Shown here piece after piece: positions 428-64,000 of a stretch of DNA of 64,000 nucleotides. The stretch is from Macrostomum lignano (lineage: Eukaryota), in assembly GCA_002269645.1 (NCBI GenBank), contig NIVC01000352.1:1-64000 (forward strand). Reading direction: 5' to 3'. The number at the start of each line of letters is the position of its first letter. The stretch's first letter is position 1. The notes under the pieces are model-generated. The model saw only the letters and a list, made by a program, of their open reading frames with translations. It was not told the DNA's origin and ran no database searches. The translations under genes and the position numbers were made by a program.

Positions 428-1126
428 GCGCCCGCGCCGGTAGAAATGAGAAGCGTCTGCTGCAGCACCTGCTTGAAAACAAATCAAATCTGCACAACCC
501 GATGGAGCGGCCTGTTGAGAACGACACCGAGATTCTGTACGTCTGGTTCAAGGTGTCACTGCAGCAGATTATCGATGTGGTAAGTTGCCTATCGTTTTGT
601 GGCGCAAATCAGGTTTTACTCCATAATTTTTCCTTGTTTTCACTTTTCATTTTTATAGGATGAGAAAAATCAAATTCTATTCTCGAGTATTTGGTTGGAC
701 TTGGTAAGTGGGCTTCGTGTGTCCAAGTTTTAATTTTGCTCTTTTCTACCGTCAAATTCATTTTTTCAGTCGTGGACAGATTATCACTTCAAGTGGGACC
801 CGCGGACTTTGGCAACATCACTAAAATTAACATCGACCCAAAGAGAGTCTGGCGACCGGACGTGCTGCTGTACAACAGGTTGGAGACTGCTTAGGCTGTC
901 CATAGAGTGAATTCAATTCTTACTCGACCCCCAGTTCCCCCATCCGCTCACCAACTCAGTCTTTTTTATTAGAGGCATGAGGGCTAACCCTGGTGCACTT
1001 AAGGACATTTTCACACATTCTCACACTCGCACAACCGGCGATAGGCATTGCTGCCCATTCCACCGACTCCCCTGAGCAGGCACACAAGCGCGCGGATACG
1101 TACGCAGTCATACGCACCGGCACACA

Positions 1127-1176
<50 letters not shown>

Positions 1177-4100
1177 AGTTTACAGCGACCCTAACTTTAT
1201 TTATCGTTAGGCATGTACACTTCCCTGTGCCTTGGGGCTTGGCCCTCAATGGCGTTAATTGCACAAGCAGAGCTAAGCCGAGATTCCAATTCAGCCCCAA
1301 ACTAATGTGACTGCACTTGGAATCGAGCCTGGGCCACTGGCACATCAGAGCGCCGCGCCAGACCACTGGGCTACGCCCCACCAACTCAGTCATTCTCTCA
1401 TACAAGCCGTAAGATATCAATGAAGCCTCCCTATCTTTTGACGATTTTTTTTAATAGCGCGGACGAAAAATTTGACGCCACTTATCCGACCAACGTGGTG
1501 ATCGACAACACGGGCTTCATGACCTACATACCGCCCGGCATGTTCAAGTCCACCTGCAAGATCGACATCACTTGGTTCCCATTCGATATGCAGGAGTGTC
1601 TGATGAAGTTCGGCTCGTGGACTTACGACGGCGGGACAGTTGATCTGCGTTTCAAGTGCGCCAACGAGAGTCTCAAGTCTGTGCAGGACCGGCTGAACGA
1701 TCCGCGACGTTGCACCGAGAGAGGCAGCGGCGACACGTCCAACTATGTGAAGAGCGGGGAGTGGAACCTGGAAGGTGCGTCTCTTGCATGGAAGTTCTAG
1801 AAGCTCGTTTGAGTGGTCTAGATGGACTTTTAATGACGTCCGCTAGCGAAATTATTTCATTCAGATTGAATCTACGACTTGGGGTTATCGGTGATAGTGG
1901 GCAAAGCAACTCACGTCAGCGGTAATGTCCTGACACTCGCCAAACACCCTATATTCAGGGTCTAGTGTACAGAAATTTTTCCCCAAGCTTGTCCGTTGTC
2001 TTTCACGTCCGTGAGGGCCAGATCAAAAAACAGATGCCTGCTCGCTGGATAGATTATCGCATTGATTAAGAGACTCCCTTTTAAACTAACAAACGAAGGT
2101 TTTTAATTCCATCAGGTCTGTTAAAATGACAACTAACCGAATTTGATGCTGATGCGCCCGTCAACTCGCGACAATTTCACTCGCCATCAACTCCATGCAG
2201 GCCTGTGGGCGTTCGAACCGGCAAACTCTACGATTGCTGCCCGCATCCGTTTGTTGACCTGAAATTTTACATGCGCATACGCAGGCGCCAGCTTTACTTT
2301 TTGTTCAACATGCTGGGCCCGGTGGCATTTCTGTCCACTTTAGCAATACTCTGCTTTCTAATTCCGCCAGACGATGGCGAGAAAGTCTGCTTCGGTGTGT
2401 TGATAGAGCTGTCAATGAGTTGTGGGCGTCACAAATGACAACTGTACACAGGGCTTTGATGTCCTGACTTTGTGTCAGATGTTTTGCAAACAAGAGCGCG
2501 CAAACGGCCTAAATACGCTCGTATATTTTGCACTACTTTGCTGAAACGTGCGCAAAATTTATTTCTCACGATCTACAAACGTATAGTCCGCCTTATCTGC
2601 GCGTTATCCTTACACATCAAAAGCTCTATTAGCCCTTTTACAGAACATAAGCTATATCTCAAATTAAAATCTCTCCGACCCTAGATTGACCAACACCCTC
2701 CGACCCTAGATTGACCAACACCCCTCCGACCCTAGATTGACCAACACCCCTCCGACCCTAGATTGACTAACACCCCTCCGACCCTAGATTGACCAACATC
2801 CCTCCGACCCTAGATTGACCAACACCCCTCCGACCCTAGATTGACCAACACCCCTCCGACCCTAGATTGACCAACACCCCTCCGACCCTAGATTGACCAA
2901 CACCCCTCCGACCCTAGATTGACCAACACCCCTCCGACCCTAGATTGACCAACACCCCTCCGACCCTAGATTGACCAACACCCCTCCGACCCTAGATTGA
3001 CCAACACCCCTTCGACCATAGATTGACCAACACCCCTCCGACCCTTAGATTGACCAACACCTCCATCGACCTTAGACTGGCCAGCACCTCCTTCAAACCT
3101 CGACTGACCGACGCACTCACTCCATTCATTCTCCATTGAACAAAAAGCCAATGGACAAAGACAGGTAAAATGATTCTCGATCCCCACGGCCCTTTAGTAC
3201 CCCAAATATACTCGCCTTCCAACGCAGGCATGCCGGGTCAGAGAACCGCTTTACTGTACGACTGCTGCCCGTTTCCCTTCATCGACCTGAAGTACCGCAT
3301 CAAGATTCGTCGGCGGACCTTATACTACGGCTTCAACCTTATCATACCGTGCGTGCTTATCTCCACTATGACACTGCTCACCTTCCTCCTGCCGCCGGAC
3401 GCAGGGGAGAAAATCTCTCTCGGTACGTACGCTCGTACGCGACAATTGGCATGTCTTTGCTCTGCAATGCTTATCAAAGTTTTGTCAAATGTAGATCCAA
3501 TGTAGGAAAATCATGGATAACAGATTGTTGTCATTTTAGACACGTTTCCGACCGTGTAATTAGATCCTCACTATATATTTTAAAGCATCAGATTCATTGC
3601 ATTGTACAGGCGTGACAATACTATTGTCACTTATCATGTTTCTGCTACTAGTAGCAGACGCGATGCCGCAGACCTCGGAGTCTCTGCCGCTGATTGGTAA
3701 ACTTCTAGAGCAGTCCATGTTATCACTGTCAAATTAAATCTTGAACGATGTACAGGCTTAGTTATCTTCTGTTTTGTGTTATCGTTGTGCTTCATGTTGT
3801 CAATATCGACTGTCTGAATTTAAGCTTTCGAACGTTCTACTAATCCAATGTGCCATGCATGTTGCATGACTCACTGCTCTACTAACTCTATTTATAGGAG
3901 TCACTATCCTGCTGTCGCTCACCGTCTTCCTCATGACGGTTGGAGAGGCCATGCCCGCCACCTCGGACTCGGTGCCAGTCATCGGTAGGTGAACTCAGCA
4001 GGCGTCTTGCAACTCCTTCTTAAGCAAATTAGGAAACAATTGAGAGTTAAGAAGATTACTCTGTATCTATGCAGAGCTGAGACCAGAATCCAGGAGGGAC

Positions 4101-7100
4101 TGAGACCAGAATCCAGGAGGGACTGAGACCAGAATCCAGGAGGGACTGAGACCAGAATCCAGGAGGGACTGAGACCAGAATCCATGAGGGACTGAGACCA
4201 GAATCCAGCAGGGACTGAGACCAGAATCCATGAGGGACTGAGACCAGAATCCATGAGGGACTGAGACCAGAATCCATGACGGACTGAGACCAGAATCCAT
4301 GACGGACTGAGACCAGAATCCATGACGGACTGAGACCAGAATCCATGAGGGACTGAGACCAGAATCCATGAGGGACTGAGACCAGAATCCTTGAGGGACT
4401 GAGACCAGAATCCATGAGGGACTGAGACCAGAATCCAGCAGGGACTGAGACCAGAATCCATGAGGGACTGAGACCAGAATCCATGAGGGACTGAGACCAG
4501 AATCCATGAGGCACTGAGACCAGAATCCATGATGGACTGAGACCAGAATCCATGAGGGACTGAGACCAGAATCCATGAGAGACTGAGACCAGAATCCATG
4601 AGGGACTGAGACCAGAATCCTTGAGGGACTGAGACCAGAATCCATGAGGGACTGAGACCAGAATCCAGGAGGGACTGAGACCAGAATCCATGAGGGACTG
4701 AGACCAGAATCCATGAGGGACTGAGACCAGAATCCATGAGGCACTGAGACCAGAATCCATGATGGACTGAGACCAGAATCCATGACGGACTGAGACCAGA
4801 ATCCATGAGGGACTGAGACCAGAATCCATGAGGGACTGAGACCAGAATCCATGAGGGACTGAGACCAAAATCCATGAGGGACTGAGACCAGAATCCATGA
4901 GAGACTGAGACCAGAATCCATGAGGGACTGAGACCAGAATCCATGAGGGACTGAGACCAGAATCCAGGAGGGACTGAGACCAGAATCCATGAGGGACTGA
5001 GACCAGAATCCATGAGGGACTGAGACCAGAATCCATGATGACTTTGACCAGACCCACGAAGTCCGGGTTCAGATTCCAGTAACCTGTATTTTGTCCATCG
5101 GTTACTAATGCCACATTTTCTGTTTCTGATTCCAATGAAACTAGAACAAATTCTGATATTACTTAACTAATTTACATGCACTTGCAAAATTAGTATTAAC
5201 ATATGACTAACTTACCCCAACGCTACCCCAAGGCTGATAGACAGTTGATACAAACCGAGCCAATTAAAACTTTGCGCTGTGGCATTTCAGGCATGTACTT
5301 TGCCTGCACAATGATCATGTGCAGTCTGTCGGTGGTATTCACGGTGATTGTGCTCAACTATCATCACAGGAATGCGGAGTCTCATCCCATACCTAACTGG
5401 GTGAGTGAGATCACTATGCTTGCGTCATTTGCAGTGTAGTGAGCTGAAGTCAATGGCTCTGACAATGCTGCTGAGTGTATATTCGAACTAGATTTGTCAG
5501 TACAGTGGAACAGGTCACGTTTTCTTTGCCCGGATCAACCCTAGCTACTCAAACTCAAGCGGTTAACCTAAAATGCTATTTGATACATTTAACTAGATTT
5601 GAGGCGACAAATTATCAGATAAAAATTACAGCTGCAGGAGGGCCGTGGGGCACCCCGGCGCGACCGCCCTCGGTGACATCGTCTCACAACCAGCGCTGAC
5701 GGCAATTCTGCCCGTTCCGCTGGCTCCTGAGCACAATTTACGAGCTACACGGTTTAGCGCTGAGTTGCTGATCTGCTCTGCTTAGCGAAAGTCAGTGAGA
5801 GACTCACTTTAGCCAGCCGGGTTGGCCTGTCGGTGCATGTGTCCCGTCGCATTCATAGCCGGTCTCGAGCCCTAAATTGAGACAATAATCAGCCAATCCA
5901 CTCAATAATGCAGGTTCGCAAGTTCATCTGCGTCTACCTGGCCAGCATTCTGTGCATGCGGCACCACGGGCGGACGGAGCACTCCGAGCCAATCAGAGTG
6001 CGACGCCGGCTGAGCGACTGGCAGCGCAGGGCCAGCCAACTGCAGCGCCGCTCCGGCGGCCTGGAACTGCGGGAGCGCTGCTCGAAATCTTTGCTGGCGA
6101 ATGTGCTGGACATTGAAGACAATTTCCGAACATCCGTGCACCGGCAGCAGCGACCATCAATAAGGTAGCTCTTTTCGATGATGTACATACAACGTTATAG
6201 TAATAAATAACTAATGTACAAGCGTAGAAGGCCGCTCAGGTGCTTTCTAAATGGATTTAGCAAAGATGTTTTACAAAATCTGTCTATAAAAATCAAGGAC
6301 CACCAGGAACACTTCGTTATTATAAGGACGTAACACTCGATTCGTGTAAAAATAGTTGAAGGCCGATTTTCGTTCTCGTATGTAAATTAGTGAGATAGAC
6401 GAATTGCATGATTTTCAACATAATGTACTGAGTGCAGAAGCCTAGTAGTCCTTGATAAAAATTACAACGAAGAGACAGGACTGACGGTAGTTTTGCCAGA
6501 ATAATAATATCAGATTGATTTTTCTGAAATTAACCAGCTTTAACTGGATAAAACAGTGATTTTTTTACAAAATCGACTTTGAGCCTAAGTTCATTCCTCA
6601 CCAAATTATACGGACTGAGAGTTCAAGGCTGGAAGGCATCAGAGTTTGGCACCAGCACATAGCACAGAGTCAGAACTGGACGTCATTGCAGATCGTATCC
6701 GACTGGACTGACGGCGTCCTTTGATGAGACGCACGGCTGGGGCCAAGAGCGCCCGCTGCCGCACCAGCAGCTGCCGACTGACTCGCCGACCTCCTACAGT
6801 GCTTGCCAACCCGGCCGGCGCGCCCGCGACGCCTCAACCGACTGGGGATCGCAACTGGACCAGCCGGATCCGAAACAACCCGACGACTGCAACAGCCAGG
6901 CCGAGCTGGAGGCCATCATTCAGGAGCTTCGCTTTGTCACCAGGAAGATCGCGAACGACGTGGCCGACGGAGAAGTCAGCAGCGAGTGGAAATTCGCAGC
7001 TAGAGTGATTGACCGGCTCTGTCTGATCCTGTTCTCCGGCTTCACTCTGATTGCAACCTGTGCCATTCTGTTCTCTGCTCCGGACGTGTTCAAAGGCTGA
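428..7100 (+). CDS. Nicotinic acetylcholine receptor alpha subunit, alpha7-like (signal-peptide exon lies upstream, not found in window)
   Basis: Exons with GT-AG ends: 428-579, 659-703 (DEKNQ, 45 nt), 770-878 (WxPD..LYN), 1458-1774 (Cys-loop [15 protein letters not shown], loop B WTYDG), 2201-2394 or 3228-3422 (loop C YDCC + TM1), 3610-3696 or 3898-3984 (TM2), 5291-5400 (TM3, 110 nt), 5914-6164 ([13 protein letters not shown] motif of invertebrate alpha7-like subunits), 6692-7100 (TM4, [16 protein letters not shown]). Vicinal cysteines define an alpha subunit. A 1-nt deletion near 800 breaks the frame as given. Confidence 0.95.
1121..1173. repeat. (CA)n microsatellite
   Basis: Direct. Confidence 0.97.
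1304..1379 (-). mobile_element. tRNA-derived SINE head (copy 1)
   Basis: Minus strand reads GGGGCGTAGCCCAGTGG (A box) ... GGCTCGATTCC (B box); near-identical copy at 42240-42316. Confidence 0.65.
2201..2394 (+). CDS. nAChR alternative exon '7a' (loop C + TM1 + TM1-TM2 linker), 194 nt, one base short
   Basis: Acceptor CCATGCAG at 2193-2200, donor GTGTGT at 2395; encodes [63 protein letters not shown]; colinear with exon 3228-3422. Confidence 0.8.
2674..3075. repeat. 26-bp minisatellite (CCGACCCTAGATTGACCAACACCCCT), about 15 copies, in intron between exons 7a and 7b
   Basis: Direct tandem copies. Confidence 0.95.
3228..3422 (+). CDS. nAChR alternative exon '7b' (loop C + TM1), 195 nt
   Basis: Acceptor AACGCAG, donor GTACGT; encodes [64 protein letters not shown]; phase 1-1, the more canonical alpha7-like copy. 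Confidence 0.93.
3610..3696 (+). CDS. nAChR alternative exon '8a' (TM2 + TM2-TM3 loop), 87 nt
   Basis: Acceptor GTACAG, donor GTAAAC; encodes [28 protein letters not shown]; not in the ORF track (no ATG). Confidence 0.88.
3898..3984 (+). CDS. nAChR alternative exon '8b' (TM2 + TM2-TM3 loop), 87 nt
   Basis: Branch point-like ACTAAC at 3881-3886, acceptor TTATAG, donor GTAGGT; encodes [28 protein letters not shown]. Confidence 0.92.
4076..5038. repeat. 23-bp minisatellite (GGGACTGAGACCAGAATCCATGA), about 42 copies, in intron after exon 8b
   Basis: Direct tandem copies; source of the repetitive ORFs 3979-5135. Confidence 0.97.
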
Positions 7101-40200: not shown

Positions 40201-40888
40201 TCCGAAATGGGTCTTAACCAACAGCACATTTCCGGCAAACACTTTTACAAGCCCCAATAATTTAATCATCTGTCCTTGTAGTTTACTGTACTTTAGCATG
40301 CAAAATAATCTTATTTATCACTTTCAGAGCTTCCAGTTCAACAGCGAGGACGAGTTCATCGGCATGTTTCAGCACTACGCGTCTCAGAGTCTGGGCGGCA
40401 TCCAGGCTGAAGAGCTGTGCCGCATCCTCAACGAGCACCCCAGCATCCGCAATTACTACCGGGTCACCTGGTCGCTGGAGCTGTGCAAAATCATGCTGGC
40501 CATGTTGGACAGATCGCGGGATGGCGTCATGCAATACGCCGAGTTCAGAGAGCTGCTCACCTGCCTGCTCTACTGGCACCGCACCTTCCAGGAATACGAT
40601 CGCGATAGAAGCGGCTTCATCGAGGCTAACGAGCTGCACAACATCATCAGCAGTCGGTTTCTGTACCGCCTGTCGGCCAAATCCATGACAATGCTGCTCA
40701 AGCGCTACTCAAAGGCCATGGACGACGGGCGCTGTTTGGTTGCTTTCGACGACTTCGTGACCCTGTCGGTGCGTCTGCGCACCTACACGGAGGCTTTCAG
40801 AGCCCGCGACCGGATGCAGCACAACGGCGAGACCGGCACCTGCCAGTTCTCCTATGACGACTTTCTGCAGTGCACAATGAGCCTGTGA
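37229..40888 (+). CDS. Penta-EF-hand calcium-binding protein (sorcin/ALG-2/peflin-like), copy A, about 234 aa
   Basis: Exon 1 37229-37372 (Q/G/Y-rich MLGWPQQDPQFYQQQ...YGSYGQNM..NPWQ, GTGAGT donor) homologous to exon 1 of copy B; exon 2 40328-40888 with EF loops DRSRDGVMQYAEF and DRDRSGFIEANEL. Confidence 0.85.
37745..37780 (-). mobile_element. hAT (Charlie-like) terminal fragment
   Basis: Reverse complement CAGGGGTTGGCAAACTCCAGCCCGCAGGGCCACA matches the common CAGGGGT..GCAAACT..GGCCCGCGGGCC terminus; partner end not found. Confidence 0.5.
37960..38135 (+). mobile_element. SINE-like element (B box + conserved body), related copy at about 46905-47045
   Basis: GGTTCGAATCC, then GGGCTAACCCCC..GGCACAGAGAGTGTACAT.CCTGA.GAT...GCTGTACACCC..GTGAGC shared by both loci. 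Confidence 0.55.
39082..39693 (-). CDS. 203-aa coiled-coil protein of unknown function, nested antisense in the PEF copy A intron
   Basis: GC-rich open frame in AT-rich intron; heptad-rich segment EKQLAEAARQF...LADLDDRLARLRDR...KAKEIAALKEQRKLKE; acidic Ser-rich tail. Confidence 0.65.
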   Translation of the reverse strand: MADQPQTVPLFKQHQDESLWRADQLLAALPDEYFPSGAASSSTPQCRCHLSRHSSQPLGLLQNYPQSPGSLSFSCSSLLSFSDSTDASSRNEDEKQLAEAARQFSLARREETQLRGQLADLDDRLARLRDRAGGERACMLLTLRRVSVERLLAGLASRADAKAKEIAALKEQRKLKETNRKSSNCDDKNLSDSGSDSEISDDF

Positions 40889-44083: not shown

Positions 44084-47000
44084 TCAGGTGCAGGTGGCGG
44101 CAGCGCCATCCAATCGGATGGACACGAAGCCGTGATCGCCAGTCCACAGCAGGCCGGAGGCGCAGCCGCCCAGGCAGAAGGAGCCGCCACCGCCGCCGAC
44201 CTGACCGTAGCCGAGGCCGGCGCCGCCGCCGCTGAATCCGCCGCCAGCGCCGGGCGCGCCTTTGGCGGTCTCGGTTAAGCAGCCGGCTCCGCCGCCGCCG
44301 CCGAAGCCGCCATCGCCGACGCTATCGTTTCCGGCGCTGCCGCCGACCCAGCCGTCGTCCAGGCCGCCGCCTCGCTCGCCATCCAAGGAGCTCCGTCTCG
44401 GGTTGACCGCCTTGCCCAGCCAGCCGGCGCCGCAGCCGCCGTGGTTCGATCCCAGTGGACTGCTTGCTGGGTTGTTGAATCCCGGCTGGCCGTTAGCGCC
44501 CCCGAATCCATAGATGCTTAGGTCTGGGCTGGCGCCTTTACTGTCTGAGCCGTTTACTCCGAGTTCACCGGGACTTCCTGATCAAAAACAATATTTTTGT
44601 GGGGTTTTCATGAATTACACCATGGACAGGGACGGTTTGCGCTTGCAACACGCATTGGCGAGATGGGAAGTTTTCAGTTCTTCAGCACTGAATTCCCAAT
44701 TTCTCACCTGCTGGACTTCCGAATTTCAGATGCAGACAGCAGGTGTTTTGTCCGTTGTGATTTCTAAACAGTGTTGCCCGTACACCGTTCAAATCTCTGA
44801 CCCTCAGTTGTACAATGCCTTCCCCCGTCACATATATCTTGGCGCTCAAGGCCATGGATGAAGGAATACTATGGATTGCTCATTTGAAATGCGTCTAATG
44901 GTCAATTTGGCCTTCTCAAAACTTGGAATTTACCCCCGTACTAACGCTATTGGCTGATGAAATCTATTCATAATCAAGAAAGGGAAATCCGAGAATTCAA
45001 ACGTTCATGTTTTAGATCTTCACCCGCGCTCTTTCAATGTAAACTCCAGTCGAACTCCTAGGGGGGGACTATTAATAGACTTCATCAGCCAATAGCGTTA
45101 GTACGGGGGTAAATTCCAGAACGCCGACCATAGGCACTCGGCAGATGATGAGCAATCCTTGTTATTCCTTCATCCATGCTCAAGGCCGCGTGGTGGCCAA
45201 GCCTTTTTTACCTCTAACCAAATCTACAAACAGATTTCCCAGAGATTTGCGTTTTGCACAGCGCTGACTGGGGTTTGGCCATAGACAAATCCGTCCAGAC
45301 AAAACACTGCAGAGACAGGAGCAGCTGCAATTTCGCCGCAACTTTGCTTGCTTGCCGGTCTCCGGCAGCAGTTCATGAAAAAACAGCTTGATAAACTTGT
45401 GAGCGCAGCTCGGACAAAACACCTGCTGACTGCATTTGCAATTCGGAAGTCCAGCAGGTGAGAAATTGGGAATTCAGTGCTGAAGAACTGAAAACTTCCC
45501 ATCTCGCCAATGAATTTCGCAGCGAAATTGAAGGATTTGAGAGTGCAGCGTCCTGCTGCTTCAGCTGTCCAAGTGTAGGTCATTGTGGGATAAGATTCGT
45601 GAAATGAAATGTACACCCAAGTTTGCAGCTAAGTTTGCTGTACTTGGAATTGAACAGTTGGGCGTACAGAAATTTTTATCATACCTTCGCAATTAAACGT
45701 CGAACCTCCGCCTCCTCCGGCAGCCATCAGCAGCATCCGGTCGGAGCTCCGGTACACAAAGCTGGCGCCGCCACCGCCGCCGCCCTCGAATTGCTGCCTA
45801 CCGGAGCCGCCCATCTGACCAACAACAATAGTCAGCTGAGTGCCAACTGTCAGGTTCACTCTGGCGCTCACGCGGGCACCCGGGCCGCCCAGAGTGCCCG
45901 ATCCGGTGTTTCGGCCGCCCCTGGCGCCGGCAGTTTCGATCAGGTAGCAGCCGGTCATCTCTATCCAAGCGTATTGGAGTGTGCCGTTCCTGCCGGCGCT
46001 GCTGTCTGCAATGCATTGTTCGAGATCCCACACAAGGCGCTGTGCTTCACGCATTGTTAACTGAAGTTTCAATCTGCTACCACTGGATTCTATCCGCATA
46101 CTTTCTGCTGAAGCGTTCATACGGAAAAAGGGTAAGAAAGGAGCACAAAAAATCCATCAATTTTGCCCTGCATTCCACCTAATTACAACCACTTTCAAGT
46201 CGGAGAAATCGCTTTTTTCGCGACGATACTTGACAATTGATGACAAAAGACAATTTATGTCGTCATAACCTCGATCATTGCCACTTTCAAGCGGATGTAA
46301 TGGACTTCTTGGCCATCACCAGCGTTTTCAGCAGCATCATCGGCAGCAGGAAAGCAGTTTCCTTTCACTCCTTCTACTAGATTTGACCAGCTTTTTAGTA
46401 GTTTAATACCAAATTTAGCAACACAGGATGGCGAGTTTCATGCTTAAGCGATTGAAAAACTTTACAGAAAAACATTCTAGTTAAAAACGCTCACTTTCGA
46501 AGCGTAAATGCGGAATCCACACGCCCCAGTCGAGCGGCCTCCACGCAATCCTACCGGCCTTGGACAGGATCGTCACGGCTTGTTGGCCAGATGAGTTGTG
46601 CGCACTGGCAGCTGGTAGCAATGAGATGGCGTGGCACACGCTCTCTGCCTCGAAGACCACCGCGGTGCAGTCCGCCTTCTCGCAGCCGGCCAGGCACTCC
46701 AACTGTAGGCTGAAATTCATTGAGACGATCCGGGAATTGTTTTTGCCAATGTTCAGATTGAGCAGTTCGATCTCGAACTCCGTGCACACCGAGTACCGCC
46801 GTCCAATCGCATGTGGGGCCGCATTCGCACCTGCTGATGGGTATTGGAAGTGTTTTATTGTATTTCTATAAACGGCGGTAATGCACCTGACTCTCGCGCC
46901 ACGATCCCTGGTTCGACTCTGTGCGCAAATACATTCATTTGATTCATATTGAAAATCAATGAGGGCCAACCCCCATGGCACAGAGAGTGTACATACCTGA

Positions 47001-55999: not shown

Positions 56000-57420
56000 A
56001 AAGAGAAAGAATAGACTATAAGAAAGAGCAGAGGGGCGAGAGGAGGATCAGAGAAAATATAGAAAATAATAAAAGAGACGAGGGGGTGAGGAGAAAGCAG
56101 AGAATATGGGAGGAAGAAGCAAAAGGAAGGATAGAGGAGGGAGAAGAAACAGTAGAGGTGAGAAGAAGGAGACAGAAGAGTTAAGAGATGAGACAGAGAA
56201 TCAATGAGAGAGCAGGGTAGAGAAGAGTGAGAAGAAAGTAGAGATGAGTAGACATAAGAGAACAGAGAGGAGATGAGAGAGGATTGAGAGGAGCGATTAG
56301 AAAGGATAGAGAAGAGATAAGAGGGGGAGAGAGGAGTGAGAAGAGAGGAGAAAAATGAGATAGAGTCGCAAAAGAAAAGGGGAGAAAGGAGAGATGATAG
56401 AGTAAAGGGAAGAGGAGGAGAGAGGAAAGAGATGAGATTTTAGAGATGAGAGAGATGAAAGAAAAACTGAAAGAGTAGAGATGAAAGATGAAGGAAGAGA
56501 GAGAGCAGAGTGCAAAGACGAGAGAAGAGAATAGAGGGAGAGAGTAGAGAAGAGGGAAGAGAAGTAAGGAAAGAGAGGAGTCAGAAGAGGGGAAAGAGAA
56601 GACTACACTGGAGAGAACATATAAGAGTAAAGATGACAGATGAGAGAAAAGAGATGAGAGAGCAGAAACGAGAGTGAACAGACGAGAGATAGGAGAGTAG
56701 AGAGAGAAGAGGAGAGATAAGAAATGAGGTGAGAGGTGGAGACAAGGGAGAGATGAGAAGTAAGTGAGGAGAGAGGAGGGGAGGGAAGAGAATCAAGAGG
56801 ACAGGGAAAATTGGTGGAAAGGGTGAGAGAGGAGAGGAAAGAGGGGAGAGATTAGAAAGAAGAGAGATGGGACAGGACAGGAGAGAGCAGAGAGAGAGAG
56901 AGAGAGAGAAAGAGAAAGAGAGAAGGAGAGGAGAGAAAGCAGAGAGAAATGAGAAAAAGATAAGAGAGAGAAGATAAAATAAGAGAAAGGAGAGATAAGA
57001 GAGCAAAGACAAGAGAGAAGAGAGGTGAGGGAAAAGATGAGAGGAGAGAGTGAAGAGAAGAGAGGAAAAAGGAGAGAGGAGAGATGAGGGAAGTGTTGAA
57101 AGAGGGTAGAGTAAGGAGTGAGAAGAGGGGAGAGGGAAGAGAGAGTAGAGAGCAGAGAGAAATGAGAAGAGATTAAAGAAGAGAAAGGAGATATGAGAGA
57201 TCAGAGACCAGAGAGAAGAGAGGAGAGGCCAGGAGAGATAAAGAGAGAAGAGAGGAGAGGCCAGGAGAGATAAAGAGAGAAGAGAGGAGAGGCCAGGAGA
57301 GAGAAAAGAATAGAGGGGAGAGGGGAGACAAGAGACGAGACAGAAGATAGGAAACAGAAGAGAAGATACTGTAGAAGTTTCAAAGTATCCAAGGGATTTA
57401 GGGAGAGGCAGAGATAGAAG
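56000..57420. repeat. 1.4-kb purine-rich (A/G) low-complexity tract
   Basis: Almost pyrimidine-free + strand; internal short tandem GAGAGAAGAGAGGAGAGGCCAGGAGAGATAAA. Confidence 0.9.
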
Positions 57421-58232
57421 CCAGAGTTTGCCTGACATTCTGCGCTGCATCCCAGCCAACAATATAAATATTTGCCTCAAATCCTAATTTTAAATGAATG
57501 TACTCTATTTTATGTTTAACTCTGTCCTAACTATAAACAAGTTTTTGTTTGAGTTTGACCTCAGATTTTAGAATACATGCAAAAATAATTCTGGGGAATG
57601 GAGTTCCCCGGGTTCAAAATCTACAGGTTTCAACAGCTTGTAAATATATATAGAAGGCAGCCTGATGCCTCTGTGGAAAAGGCCTATACATGTGTCATTT
57701 ATAATGTTTAGTATTGTTTTAAAATTTTAATTTTGAAAAAATTCTGAAGGTAAAATTTTGGAAATGTTGAAAAAAGTGGCTAAAATAAACTAATTTCTGC
57801 AAAACTAATTTCTGCTACATATACATGTATATTTTTTTGTTTTGTTTAAATAGTAAATAAAAAGTAAAAAAAGTGAGTGTTAGTCATACTAAACTTTGTT
57901 TTTCTAAATTTTAATTTTGAAAAATTTAATTTTTAATTTAAGAAACTTAGCCAATTTGATATGTTACAGAAAATGCTTTTTTTAGAACATCTAATATGCT
58001 AAAATGCAGTAAAATAATTTGACTCTATTCTAAAGTGCGCATCCATAAGTTTTCAATATTTATTCCAACGCAGCAGGGTTTCAAATAGTTTTATAAAGTG
58101 CATACTAGGTATATAGACACTTTTTTCTTAGGAGTCATGCATGCCAATTATGCATGCCTAACTTTTGGCTTGCAAGGCCAATGCATACCTATATTTTTGG
58201 GCATACTATATGATCTAGAGTGTGGTATACAT

Positions 58233-59775: not shown

Positions 59776-62278
59776 ATGAAGCTCATAATTGATGTAGACA
59801 CAGGCATGGACGATGCTCAGGCATTGTTGCTGGCGCTCCGCAGTCCCCAAGCCCAGGTCCTGGCTGTCACCTGCATTGGCGGCAATGTTCCTCTGGACCT
59901 AGTAGTTCGCAACACCCGCCTAGTGGTGGCAGCTGCTAACTGGCCCGGACAGCCAGCGCCACGCGTGTTTGCTGGCTGCAGTCGGCCGCTGGTGTCAGAC
60001 GGCGATGGAGAGATCCGAGCGACGCATTATCACGGCAGCGATGGCATTGCCGGCGCCTGGGAGAAGCTCACCTCTAGCGACTCAACAAAGTCAGAAGTGG
60101 AGGCCGCGGTGAACTCTGTGCCAGTGGAATCCATGCACGCCGCCCTGGGCCTGATTGAGCTGGTGTCGCAGAACAAAGGCGAGGTCACCCTGCTGGCCCT
60201 GGCTCCATTGACCAACATTGCGCTGGCGCTGCGCCTCGAGCCGCGCCTTGGCACCTGGTTGAGAAGCCTAGTAGTCATGGGCGGCGCCTATCAGTCTATG
60301 GGCAATAATGAGCGCCATCTTAGCGCCGAGTTCAACTTTGTACACGATCCGGAGGCGGCGCGCCTTGTGCTGCACGAGATGCTGCCCTGTCCCAGGCTGA
60401 TCGTCCCTTACGAAGCCTGCTTGGAGAGCAGCCTGCCGTTTGATTGGGCGATTACCTGGGCCGCTGGTGGTAACGCTGCTGACGAGCCTAAGCCCTTGTG
60501 GCGTCGTCTCCATGAGCTGATTGTGTCTCACCAGTGCCTGATGCAGCGTGGTCAGGTCTGTGTTCAGGATTGTTCTTTGTTTTAACCTGTTTCAGCCTTG
60601 GTTTTGACATCTTGAGTTTGATTTTGGCATCAGGACTTTGATTTTGGCATCCTGAATTTGATTGTGGCATCCTGAATTTGATTCTGGCATCCTGACTTTG
60701 ATTGTGGCATCCTGACTTTGATTCTGGCATCCTGACTTTGATTCTGGCATCCTGAATTTGATTATGGCATCCTGACTTTGATTGTGGCATCCTGAATTTG
60801 ATTCTGGCATCTTGACTTTGATTCTGGCATCCTGAATTTGATTCTGGCATCCTGACTTTGATTGTGGCATCCTGAATTTGATTCTGGCATCTTGACTTTG
60901 ATTCTGGCATCCTGACTTTGATTCTGGCATCAGGACTTTGATTCTGGCATCCTGAATTTGATTCTGGCATCCTGACTTTGATTGTGGCATTCTGAATTTG
61001 ATTCTGGCATCCTGACTTTGATTCTGGCATCCTGACTTTGATTCTGGCATCGTGAATTTGATTGTGGCATTCTGAATTTGATTCTGGCATCCTGACTTTG
61101 ATTCTGGCATCCTGAATTAGATTCTGGCATCAGGACTTTGATTCTGGCATCCTGAATTTGATTCTGGCATCAGGACTTTGATTGTGGCATCCTGACTTTG
61201 ATTGTGGCATCAGGACTTTGATTCTGGCATCCTGACTTTGATTGTGGCATCCTGACTTTGATTCTGGCATCCTGACTTTGATTTTGGCATCCTGACTTTG
61301 ATTCTGGCATCTTGACTTTGATTCTGGCATCCTGAATTTGATTCTGGCATCCTGACTTTGATTCTGGCATCCTGACTTTGATTCTGGCATCCTGACTTTG
61401 ATTCTGGCATCCTGAATTTGATTCTGGCATCCTGACTTTGATTCTGGCATCCTGACTTTGATTGTGGCATCCTGACTTTGATTCTGGCATCCTGAATTTG
61501 ATTCTGGCATCCTGACTTTGATTTTGGCATCCTGAATTTGATTGTGGCATCCTGACTTTGATTCTGGCATCCTGAGTTTGATTCTGGCATGACTGAGTTT
61601 GGCATCATGACTGTGTTTATAGCATCCTGAAGGTGAGAGATTTCAACTAAGACTACTGAGAAAAGTAGACGAATAAAGACTTGAATCGTAAAATCTCTCA
61701 CCTAGCCCGAAAATGTCGCCATTAGAAACGGCAGCATATAAAAGAAACCATCTGTGCACACTGGGAGTGGTTGGCGTGTGGCCATGGCTGACTGACGAAG
61801 GCCAACAATCCAGAAACCGGTCTTGGTCTGCCTGCGCCGAGGTTCGATCTCCACTTTTAGTGTGTCACAGCAGACAGTGCTTCCTGTATTAAAGTTATTT
61901 AGGCTAATCAGCATGTGCACCGGTCTCACTTTCACACAGTATAGGATAGCTACGTACTATCTACTAAGAGTAGGCACCTATGAATTCAAATTATTATGAT
62001 TTCAGACGTTCGCGCTCACCCTGGCCCAGCCGTTGGCCTATCGCAGCTGCGACCTGCTGGCGGCCAGCATCTGCCTGCTGCCCAGCGTAGCCTCAGACGT
62101 ACTGGAGAAGCGTTGCACTATTGAACTGGCCGGCGGCGTCACCAGAGGTCAGCTGGTGGTTGATTGGTTCGACAAGGCGGACCGCGGGCTCAGCAAAGTG
62201 GCCACCGTGTCAGCCAGGTTTGTGACCAAAGTCGCACTGGATGCCTACCGGGCACTGCTGTTTGAAACTCTGGGATAA
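59776..62278 (+). CDS. Inosine-uridine preferring nucleoside hydrolase family protein, about 350 aa
   Basis: Ca-binding motif DVDTGMDDA, GNV, HGSDG, LAPLTNIALAL, VMGG, AEFNFVHDPEAA; exons 59776-60555 and 62006-62278 (phase 0); SCDLLAA and TRGQLVVDW in exon 2. Confidence 0.92.
60597..61590. repeat. 20-bp minisatellite (GATTCTGGCATCCTGACTTT), about 50 copies, in the hydrolase intron
   Basis: Direct. Confidence 0.97.
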
Positions 62279-62449: not shown

Positions 62450-62872
62450 GCCTGAATTCATGGTGTCACCATTGCCTGAATAGCCTGAATGTACAGTATC
62501 ACCTTTGCCTGAATAGCCTGAATGTACAGTGTCACCATTGCCTGAATAGCCTGAATGTACAGTGTCACCATTGCCTGAATAGCCTGAATGTACAGTGTCA
62601 CCATTGCCTGAATAGCCTGAATGTACAGTGTCACCATTGCCTGAATAGCCTGAATGTACAGTGTCACCATTGCCTGAATAGCATGAATGTACAGTGTCAC
62701 CATTGCCTGAATAGCCTGAATGCATGGTGTCATCATTGTTTGAATAGCCTGAATGTACAGTGTCACCATTGCCTGAATAGCCTGAATGTACAGTGTCACC
62801 ATTGCCTGAATAGCCTGAATGTACAGTGTCACCATTGCCTGAATAGCCTGAATGTACAGTGTCACCATTGCT
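62450..62872. repeat. 33-bp minisatellite (CCTGAATAGCCTGAATGTACAGTGTCACCATTG), about 13 copies
   Basis: Direct. Confidence 0.96.

Positions 62873-63303: not shown

Positions 63304-64000
<697 letters not shown>

Follow-up and report, generated by a model that had tools for sequence, protein, structure and literature searches.

We analysed a window of 64,000 nucleotides (nt) from the flatworm Macrostomum lignano (assembly GCA_002269645.1, contig NIVC01000352.1, positions 1 to 64,000 of the forward strand); the term window refers to this whole stretch. A gene for an alpha7-like (homomer-type) subunit of the nicotinic acetylcholine receptor (nAChR) lies on its + strand at approximately 428-7099. 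Between the exons for the first and third transmembrane segments (TM1 and TM3), this gene carries two tandem copies, 8a and 8b, of the exon for the second segment (TM2). We consider it likely that 8a and 8b are tandem duplicated, alternatively spliced exons, of which each mRNA receives one, so that the gene produces two variant subunits. A second tandem pair, the TM1 exons 7a and 7b (65 codons each), is located directly upstream, and the order is 7a-7b-8a-8b.

The exons were located by a search guided by vertebrate alpha7, and the splice sites were then fitted by hand. The human alpha7 query served as a guide only; the tested version is the alignment to the solved human alpha7. In the protein collections, the top matches came from M. 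lignano itself. In the isoform assembled with 7b and 8a, Pfam recognised Neur_chan_LBD (PF02931, E 7e-62) and Neur_chan_memb (PF02932, E 1e-49). The closest relative of the assembled protein in the PDB is human alpha7 (E 5e-116, compared with 4e-87 for alpha4), and the alignment to it contains no gaps through TM1-TM3. The hallmarks of an alpha subunit are present, namely the Cys-loop (C-x13-C) in exon 5 and the vicinal cysteine pair (YDCC) in both 7a and 7b. The pore is of the cation type, with GEK (-1' Glu) ahead of the TM2 helix (M2) in both copies of exon 7 and without a -2' Pro insertion. The -1' Glu, the 0' Lys and positions 1'-4' come from exon 7, and positions 5'-32' from exon 8. The window did not yield exon 1, with the signal peptide. 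The exon map of the gene is as follows.

428..579, + strand: exon 2, N-terminal ligand-binding domain (...GRNEKRLL...QQIIDV)
659..703, + strand: exon 3, 45 nt, 15 residues; single in the window gene, duplicated in the nemertean orthologue
770..878, + strand: exon 4, 109 nt where 110 are expected; the C-run in tgggaCCCgcgg is one base short, a frameshift as assembled
1458..1774, + strand: exon 5, equivalent to the fused vertebrate exons 5 and 6; holds the Cys-loop
2201..2394, + strand: exon 7a, first copy of the TM1 exon (loop C, pre-M1, TM1 and M1-M2 loop; ...YDCCPHPF...); 194 nt, one G under 195, out of phase as assembled
3228..3422, + strand: exon 7b, second copy of the TM1 exon (...YDCCPFPF...); 195 nt, in phase, canonical alpha7-like type
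3423..3609, + strand: intron 7b-8a, 187 nt, 37% GC
3610..3696, + strand: exon 8a, 87 nt, TM2 and M2-M3 linker; flatworm-derived type (M13', L16', D20', Q24', E27')
3697..3897, + strand: the 201-nt spacer, intron 8a-8b; TACTAAC, a consensus branch site, at 3880-3886, with its branch A 13 nt upstream of exon 8b
3898..3984, + strand: exon 8b, 87 nt, TM2 and M2-M3 linker; ancestral alpha7-like type (V13', M16', E20', A24', D27') with gene-specific T17' and G19'
3985..5290, + strand: intron 8b-9, 1306 nt, mostly a 23-nt minisatellite (4077-5052, 42.5 copies)
5291..5400, + strand: exon 9, 110 nt, TM3
5914..6164, + strand: exon 10, cytoplasmic loop
6692..7099, + strand: exon 11, remaining cytoplasmic loop, TM4 and stop codon

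The original prediction, made from the letters of the window, had placed two tandem TM2 exons at 3610-3984 with a 201-nt spacer, and its positions and peptides proved correct to the base. Each exon is 87 nt long, is entered and left in phase 1 and has its own AG/GT splice sites. The acceptors read tgtacAG/GCGTG for 8a and tttatAG/GAGTC for 8b, and the donors read GATTG/GTaaac and CATCG/GTaggt, respectively. The two copies agree at 54 of 87 nt and at 19 of 29 residues (66%). Only three of the 29 codons are the same in both; synonymous changes account for 16 and non-synonymous ones for 10, in keeping with the earlier description of the copies as diverged at synonymous sites, both open and equal in length (87/87 nt). 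In tblastn searches of an 18-kb paralogous locus, each exon found the other type at E ~1e-8 to 1e-10. These matches, and the right place and phase of the pair between the TM1 and TM3 exons, exclude a chance origin. An assembly duplication artefact was also ruled out, as the copies are only 62% identical in DNA and their differences are mostly synonymous.

The prime numbering, counted from the lysine of GEK as 0' and with T6', L9' and S10' common to both copies, was confirmed by the gap-free alignment to the solved human alpha7. All the differences first listed are present (8a/8b: 12' I/T, 13' M/V, 16' L/M, 17' L/T, 19' A/G and 20' D/E). That list was incomplete, having left out four positions of the M2-M3 linker: 24' (Q/A), 27' (E/D), 29' (L/V) and 31' (L/V). 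Across paralogues, the positions that define the two types are only 13' M/V, 16' L/M, 20' D/E, 24' Q(K)/P(A) and 27' E/D; T17' and G19' occur in the 8b of the window gene alone.

Conservation of the two TM2 exon types

The genomic loci of two M. lignano paralogues, B and C, were taken from the same assembly, and the window gene is referred to as A. Paralogue B, found at one locus (L001) and a near-identical second one (L005), has the order 7a-7b-8a-8b, with copies of 195 or 87 nt each and splice sites that are all canonical. The locus of paralogue C (L002) contains one 7b-type and one 8a-type exon only. Protein models point to further paralogues, D with 7a+7b+8a and E with 7a+8b. In paralogue C (L002 14160-14262), the 3' splice site and the adjoining ~19 nt of the TM2 exon, gcag/GCGTGATGATCATGCTGTC, form three tandem repeats, which creates two upstream decoy acceptors.

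The 8a exons of A and B have 24 of 28 residues in common and their 8b exons 22 of 28, compared with 17-18 of 28 between types. Since both types recur in the same order in B and group across genes, the exons were duplicated before the gene was. We calculated the proportions of synonymous (pS) and non-synonymous (pN) differences by the Nei-Gojobori method with a Fisher test, on 28 codons per comparison. The pN/pS ratios below are rough upper bounds because these samples are small and the synonymous sites are near saturation.

8a, A vs B: pS 0.53, pN 0.09, pN/pS 0.18, Fisher p 9e-5
8b, A vs B: pS 0.70, pN 0.11, pN/pS 0.15, Fisher p 2e-7
8a vs 8b inside the window: pS 0.76, pN 0.23, pN/pS 0.30, Fisher p 1.6e-5

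As pN is far below pS between the paralogues, purifying selection has acted on both 8a and 8b since the duplication. Such selection on both copies had been suggested from the window, and the same-type ratios between A and B (0.18 for 8a and 0.15 for 8b) bear it out.

Each type also occurs elsewhere as the sole TM2 exon. Trematode orthologues have a TM2 exon with the derived M13', D20', Q24' and E27' of the 8a type. This type is the only TM2 exon in the gene ranges of Schistosoma japonicum (87 kb) and Opisthorchis viverrini (70 kb), as it is in paralogue C; the original prediction had considered that 8a might not be conserved in relatives, which is not the case. The nemertean, annelid and bivalve proteins carry LSLTVFLLLVAETMPPTSDAVPLI, the 8b type, and the locus of the nemertean Lineus longissimus (L006) has a single TM2 exon of this type at 81079-81168. 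Because the 8b type is carried by the proteins of these three groups, 8b is the ancestral form. On the distribution of the sequences, the 8a type arose inside the flatworms, before the split of Macrostomum and the parasitic lineages, and the parasites and paralogue C retained 8a alone. The O. viverrini locus (L004) also contains two TM1 exon copies, 45619-45804 and 46653-46838, which are protein-identical and ~1 kb apart; they represent a recent duplication or an assembly artefact.

Splicing of the exon pair

Mutually exclusive use of 8a and 8b in the window gene is strongly implied. We infer that the exons are used one at a time because a subunit with both TM2 segments would have the wrong topology and because the RNA-based models of paralogue B take one exon. 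These models, the BOX15_ entries of GenBank, were built on a genome-guided transcriptome (PMC5730564) and contain 7b+8a but neither 7a nor 8b. In the Lineus orthologue, the RefSeq isoforms X1-X4 and X6 are all 480 amino acids long, with the tandem exons 3, 4 and 7 exchanged one for one. Arthropod alpha6/alpha7-like genes have 2-4 tandem TM2 exons, and the mutual exclusivity of those of alpha6 has been established experimentally (PMC1919356). Each exon of the window gene would supply positions 5' to 32', which cover the M2 helix except for its lower third, together with the M2-M3 gating linker. The ligand-binding domain, TM3 and TM4 would be common to the two variants, whose differences would lie at 13', 16', 17' and 20' of the outer pore and at 24', 27', 29' and 31' of the linker.

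Several observations weigh against alternative use of the two exons. Searches of protein collections with full-length, concatenated-exon and short junction-spanning queries returned no transcript-derived fragment of the window gene, and the match length seemed to follow the query length. In genes with both exons, the sole RNA-based models use 8a. The GC content at third codon positions (GC3) is 0.57 in 8a, compared with 0.86 in 8b, 0.62 in 7a, 0.75 in 7b, 0.67-0.78 in most constitutive exons and 0.47 in exon 3 (15 codons); 8a may thus be the minor or less constrained form in the window gene, and the pattern hints weakly at 7b/8b as the main combination there. In addition, double inclusion or double skipping would keep the frame (87 = 3 x 29), and no conserved intronic element or RNA pairing able to enforce exclusivity was found. 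Finally, the window copy as assembled has two frameshifts, in exon 4 and in 7a.

The missing transcripts and the presence of 8a alone in the RNA-based models of paralogue B would also be expected if the window gene used one exon only, the other being a decaying relic or pseudo-exon still open by luck. The GC3 of 8a, below that of the rest of the gene, and the unusual T17' and G19' of 8b fit this explanation as well. We consider it quite unlikely, given that length, phase, frame and splice sites are kept in two paralogues despite a pS of 0.5-0.7, with a pN of 0.09-0.11. A relic would not stay intact for so long, and the introns of A and B share nothing above chance. The annotation pipeline of the BOX15_ models included a transcript filter with an isoform-fraction setting of 0.75 (PMC5730564), which we take to mean that minor isoforms were dropped; if so, the lack of an 8b model says little. 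The opposite explanation, in which both exons are constitutive and the protein has two TM1 and two TM2 segments in series, is drawn from the database. Four near-identical UniProt models of the window gene (A0A1I8GWB3, A0A1I8G5P1, A0A1I8JBH6 and A0A1I8H666), as well as two of paralogue B, join 7a+7b+8a+8b in frame. The same models skip exon 3 or read through introns and look like ab initio artefacts, the identical artefact occurs in arthropod models of a cluster known to be mutually exclusive, and the RNA-derived models use one exon per pair. Extra membrane passes would, as far as is known, fit the fold of none of the pentameric channels that have been solved. An in-series protein is therefore extremely improbable, and the serial models are annotation errors of the kind that ab initio prediction typically makes on clusters of alternative exons. 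At least six M. lignano UniProt entries (the four models of the window gene, A0A1I8HAX1 and the P0005 entry) string together two TM1 and two TM2 segments, and other exons are missing from them or misread.

The two frameshifts raise the question of whether the window copy is a pseudogene. If they were real, the exon pair would be a fossil here, and the functional copies would lie elsewhere in a partly duplicated genome. Exon 4 and 7a measure 109 and 194 nt as assembled, the sister model A0A1I8H666 is also disrupted in both exons, and M. lignano assemblies are highly redundant (PMC5730564). Each deficit is a single base, located in the C-run of exon 4 at ~796-800 and in the G-run at the 5' end of 7a at ~2206-2209 (cctgtGGGcg). 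The frame is restored if CCC is read as CCCC and GGG as GGGG, so that both would be homopolymer contractions. Three sister models are in frame at these points, and the UniProt models read exon 4 as ...WDPADFG... and 7a as G-LWGVRTGK.... Furthermore, over 2.4 kb the two GenBank copies of paralogue B show 9 gaps relative to each other and not a single substitution, which is the signature of long-read indel error and not of decay. Because the B copies differ by gaps and not by substitutions, long-read errors in homopolymers are the probable cause of the frameshifts in the window gene. The rest of the gene has neither stop codons nor substitutions in conserved motifs. Taken together, a pseudogene is unlikely.

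As to what could enforce the choice between 8a and 8b, the original prediction had called the 201-nt spacer too long for steric exclusion, and we agree: the branch A of TACTAAC (3885) is 188 nt from the 8a donor. Steric hindrance of the alpha-tropomyosin type, in which the donor and the branch point are under about 50-60 nt apart, is thus excluded. An incompatibility of U2 and U12 splice sites is excluded as well, since the donors are GTACGT, GTAAAC and GTAGGT, the acceptors are all AG and there is no U12-type donor (RTATCCTT). Nonsense-mediated decay is unable to enforce the choice because 87 is a multiple of three, which excludes exclusivity policed in this way.

Docking and selector pairing of the Dscam type was assessed by a scan of sliding 36-nt duplexes over 15 intron pairs with 20 shuffles; whole-intron duplex folding was uninformative. 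The duplexes of most intron pairs of the window fell within the shuffled range, by crude methods that weak or gapped pairings could escape. The sole outlier joins 3150-3184, in the intron before 7b, to 5065-5099, in the intron before exon 9 (-30.1 kcal/mol, z -4.4). This pairing would loop out 7b, 8a and 8b together, a geometry without functional sense, and it may be of chance origin. The introns of A and B have 5 10-mers in common, where ~7 are expected, and no motifs common to A and B or C were above chance. An Rfam scan of the window gave no match. In both paralogues the 3' splice signals of 8b are stronger than those of 8a: 8b has a CTAAC and a pyrimidine fraction of 0.70-0.75, and 8a is without CTAAC and has a fraction of 0.60. 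Our best guess, held with low confidence, is that cell-type-specific trans-acting splicing regulators would act on these unequal 3' splice sites and pick the exon.

The TM1 pair, related systems and expected function

The neighbouring 7a/7b pair changes residues flanking loop C, all of M1 and the pore positions 1'-3' (ISL vs VCF or VSF). The pN/pS ratio is 0.36 for 7a and 0.17 for 7b, so that 7a is also under purifying selection, though a more relaxed one. The TM1 pair is present in paralogue B as well. The alpha7-like gene of Lineus is orthologous to the window gene and resembles it in exon structure, in having tandem exons exchanged one for one and in the signatures of 7a and 7b: its 7a-type and 7b-type exons, which are used alternatively, carry ...IPPDAGEKVSFG and a second 12-residue signature, respectively, as in M. 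lignano. It differs in its one TM2 exon, of the 8b type, and in that exons 3 and 4 also form alternative pairs, the pair of exon 4 being recognised by isoform comparison. The tandem copies located in the Lineus locus (L006) are as follows.

62458-62502 and 62606-62650: exon 3 copies
76692-76889 and 77676-77873: exon 7 copies

Between phyla, the 7a types resemble each other overall only a little more than background. As it is seemingly shared with nemerteans, the TM1 pair would long predate the flatworm-specific TM2 pair, and we regard it as the more interesting addition of the two.

The two pairs might be coupled, with a matched TM1/TM2 module swapped as a unit, either the outer 7a+8b or the inner 7b+8a. 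Hints of this are the order 7a-7b-8a-8b, the presence of 7b+8a only at the C locus, the protein models of E with 7a+8b and the RNA-based models of B with 7b+8a. In paralogue B, L001 4310-4342 can pair with 6316-6347 (L005 27433-27445 and 29452-29464), with a 13-bp perfect core, GAATGGATGATCA. The energy of this stem is -38.9 kcal/mol, compared with -25.1 +/- 2.3 for shuffled sequences (z -6.1), and none of 60 shuffles was as good. Its arms lie 26-58 nt past the 7a donor and 69-100 nt ahead of the 8b acceptor, so that it would loop out 7b+8a. No equivalent stem is seen in the window gene (z 0.1), and Lineus uses either exon 7 with its one TM2. Both observations weigh against coupling, which we consider doubtful.

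Exchange of a pore exon is a known device in other animals and other channels. The arthropod type of mutually exclusive exon 8 was reportedly first described for Drosophila Dalpha6. Pore segments are encoded by mutually exclusive exons elsewhere, as in exons 8/8a of CaV1.2 and the exon pairs of the insect para sodium channel. These channels resemble the present case in that a pore-lining or gating segment is swapped and the rest is kept; they belong to unrelated families, and there is no homology. The exons 8a/8b/8c of arthropod alpha6 (Jin et al. 2007, PMC1919356) are much closer. They belong to the same alpha7-like clade and are copies of the same exon, with 87 nt and with boundaries after GEKxxLG and before xYF. 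They are also arranged in tandem with one per mRNA (inferred in M. lignano), the same residues of M2 and the M2-M3 linker are diversified, and the copies are closer across species or genes than to one another. The differences are that the phylum is another one (Platyhelminthes), that arthropods have 2-4 copies, compared with two in M. lignano, that the variant signatures are not shared and that the M. lignano pair adjoins a duplicated TM1 exon.

The flatworm 8a agrees with any beetle variant at 17-18 of 28 residues, no closer than with the 8b types. A common origin with the arthropod cluster is unsupported, given the single TM2 exon in the nemertean and trematode loci and the lack of shared signatures (with one outgroup locus covered at the DNA level). 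Because only one TM2 exon is present in the nemertean locus and in the protein models of annelids and bivalves, the flatworm duplication was probably independent of that in arthropods. Full-text literature searches returned no report of a TM2 exon pair for flatworms. Judged from sequence comparison, the pair would be the device known from arthropod alpha6 in a new phylum, probably by convergence. Pore-exon swapping of alpha7-like receptors would thus extend beyond arthropods, and, with a duplication that was probably independent, homomeric nAChRs appear to have in their outer pore and M2-M3 linker a recurrent target of isoform diversification.

The closest functional data come from vertebrate alpha7 and its M2 point mutants (L247, V251, L254, L255 and E237; PMC4959957), among which those at 13', 16' and 17' hit positions where 8a and 8b differ; vertebrate CHRNA7 differs in having a single exon 8. 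Mutation of V251 (13'), L254 (16') or L255 (17') alters desensitisation, Ca2+ permeability is reduced by L254R/T and L255R/T/G, and the AEIMPATSDS stretch (19'-28') matters for positive allosteric modulation by PNU120596 (PMC4959957). The differences between 8a and 8b fall on 13', 16', 17' and the region 19'-28', and T17' of 8b is equivalent to L255T. Of the effects that the original prediction had attached to these positions, desensitisation (13', 16', 17') and Ca2+ permeability (16'/17') agree with the published mutants (PMC4959957). The claim of an effect on charge selectivity was overstated; this property should not change, because the -1' Glu sits in exon 7 and 20' is acidic in both variants. 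The two exons are expected to give two cation channels that would differ in gating or desensitisation kinetics and in conductance or Ca2+/divalent permeability; of the two forms of this gene, 8b (M16', T17') is predicted to be less permeable to Ca2+ than 8a (L16', L17'). The effects may be modest, because most of the differences are conservative (V/M, L/M, D/E).

The pair offers a natural set of M2 variants (13', 16', 17', 20') in a transgenesis-capable flatworm. As 8a is the sole form in schistosomes and liver flukes, comparing it with the ancestral 8b in one gene could reveal what sets the parasite channel apart, and this channel belongs to a potential drug target class.

Repeats are frequent in and beside the gene and elsewhere in the window. 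A 31-nt minisatellite (x 6) lies at 208-393, before exon 2, and a 26-nt one (x 16) at 2673-3088, in intron 7a-7b. The 23-nt unit in intron 8b-9 contains ATCCATGA, the complement of TCATGGAT at 3511-3518 upstream of 8a. Outside the gene, an exon of an EF-hand protein is located at 40298-40888 (+) and an exon of a nucleoside hydrolase at 59776-60585 (+), the latter matching the inosine-uridine nucleoside hydrolase family (Pfam PF01156, E 2e-56). A long purine-only (AG-rich) low-complexity tract with a GC skew of 0.66 occupies ~56000-57500. A 20-nt minisatellite (x 49) extends over 60608-61590, and a (GATA)n array runs from 63304 to the end of the window at 64000.

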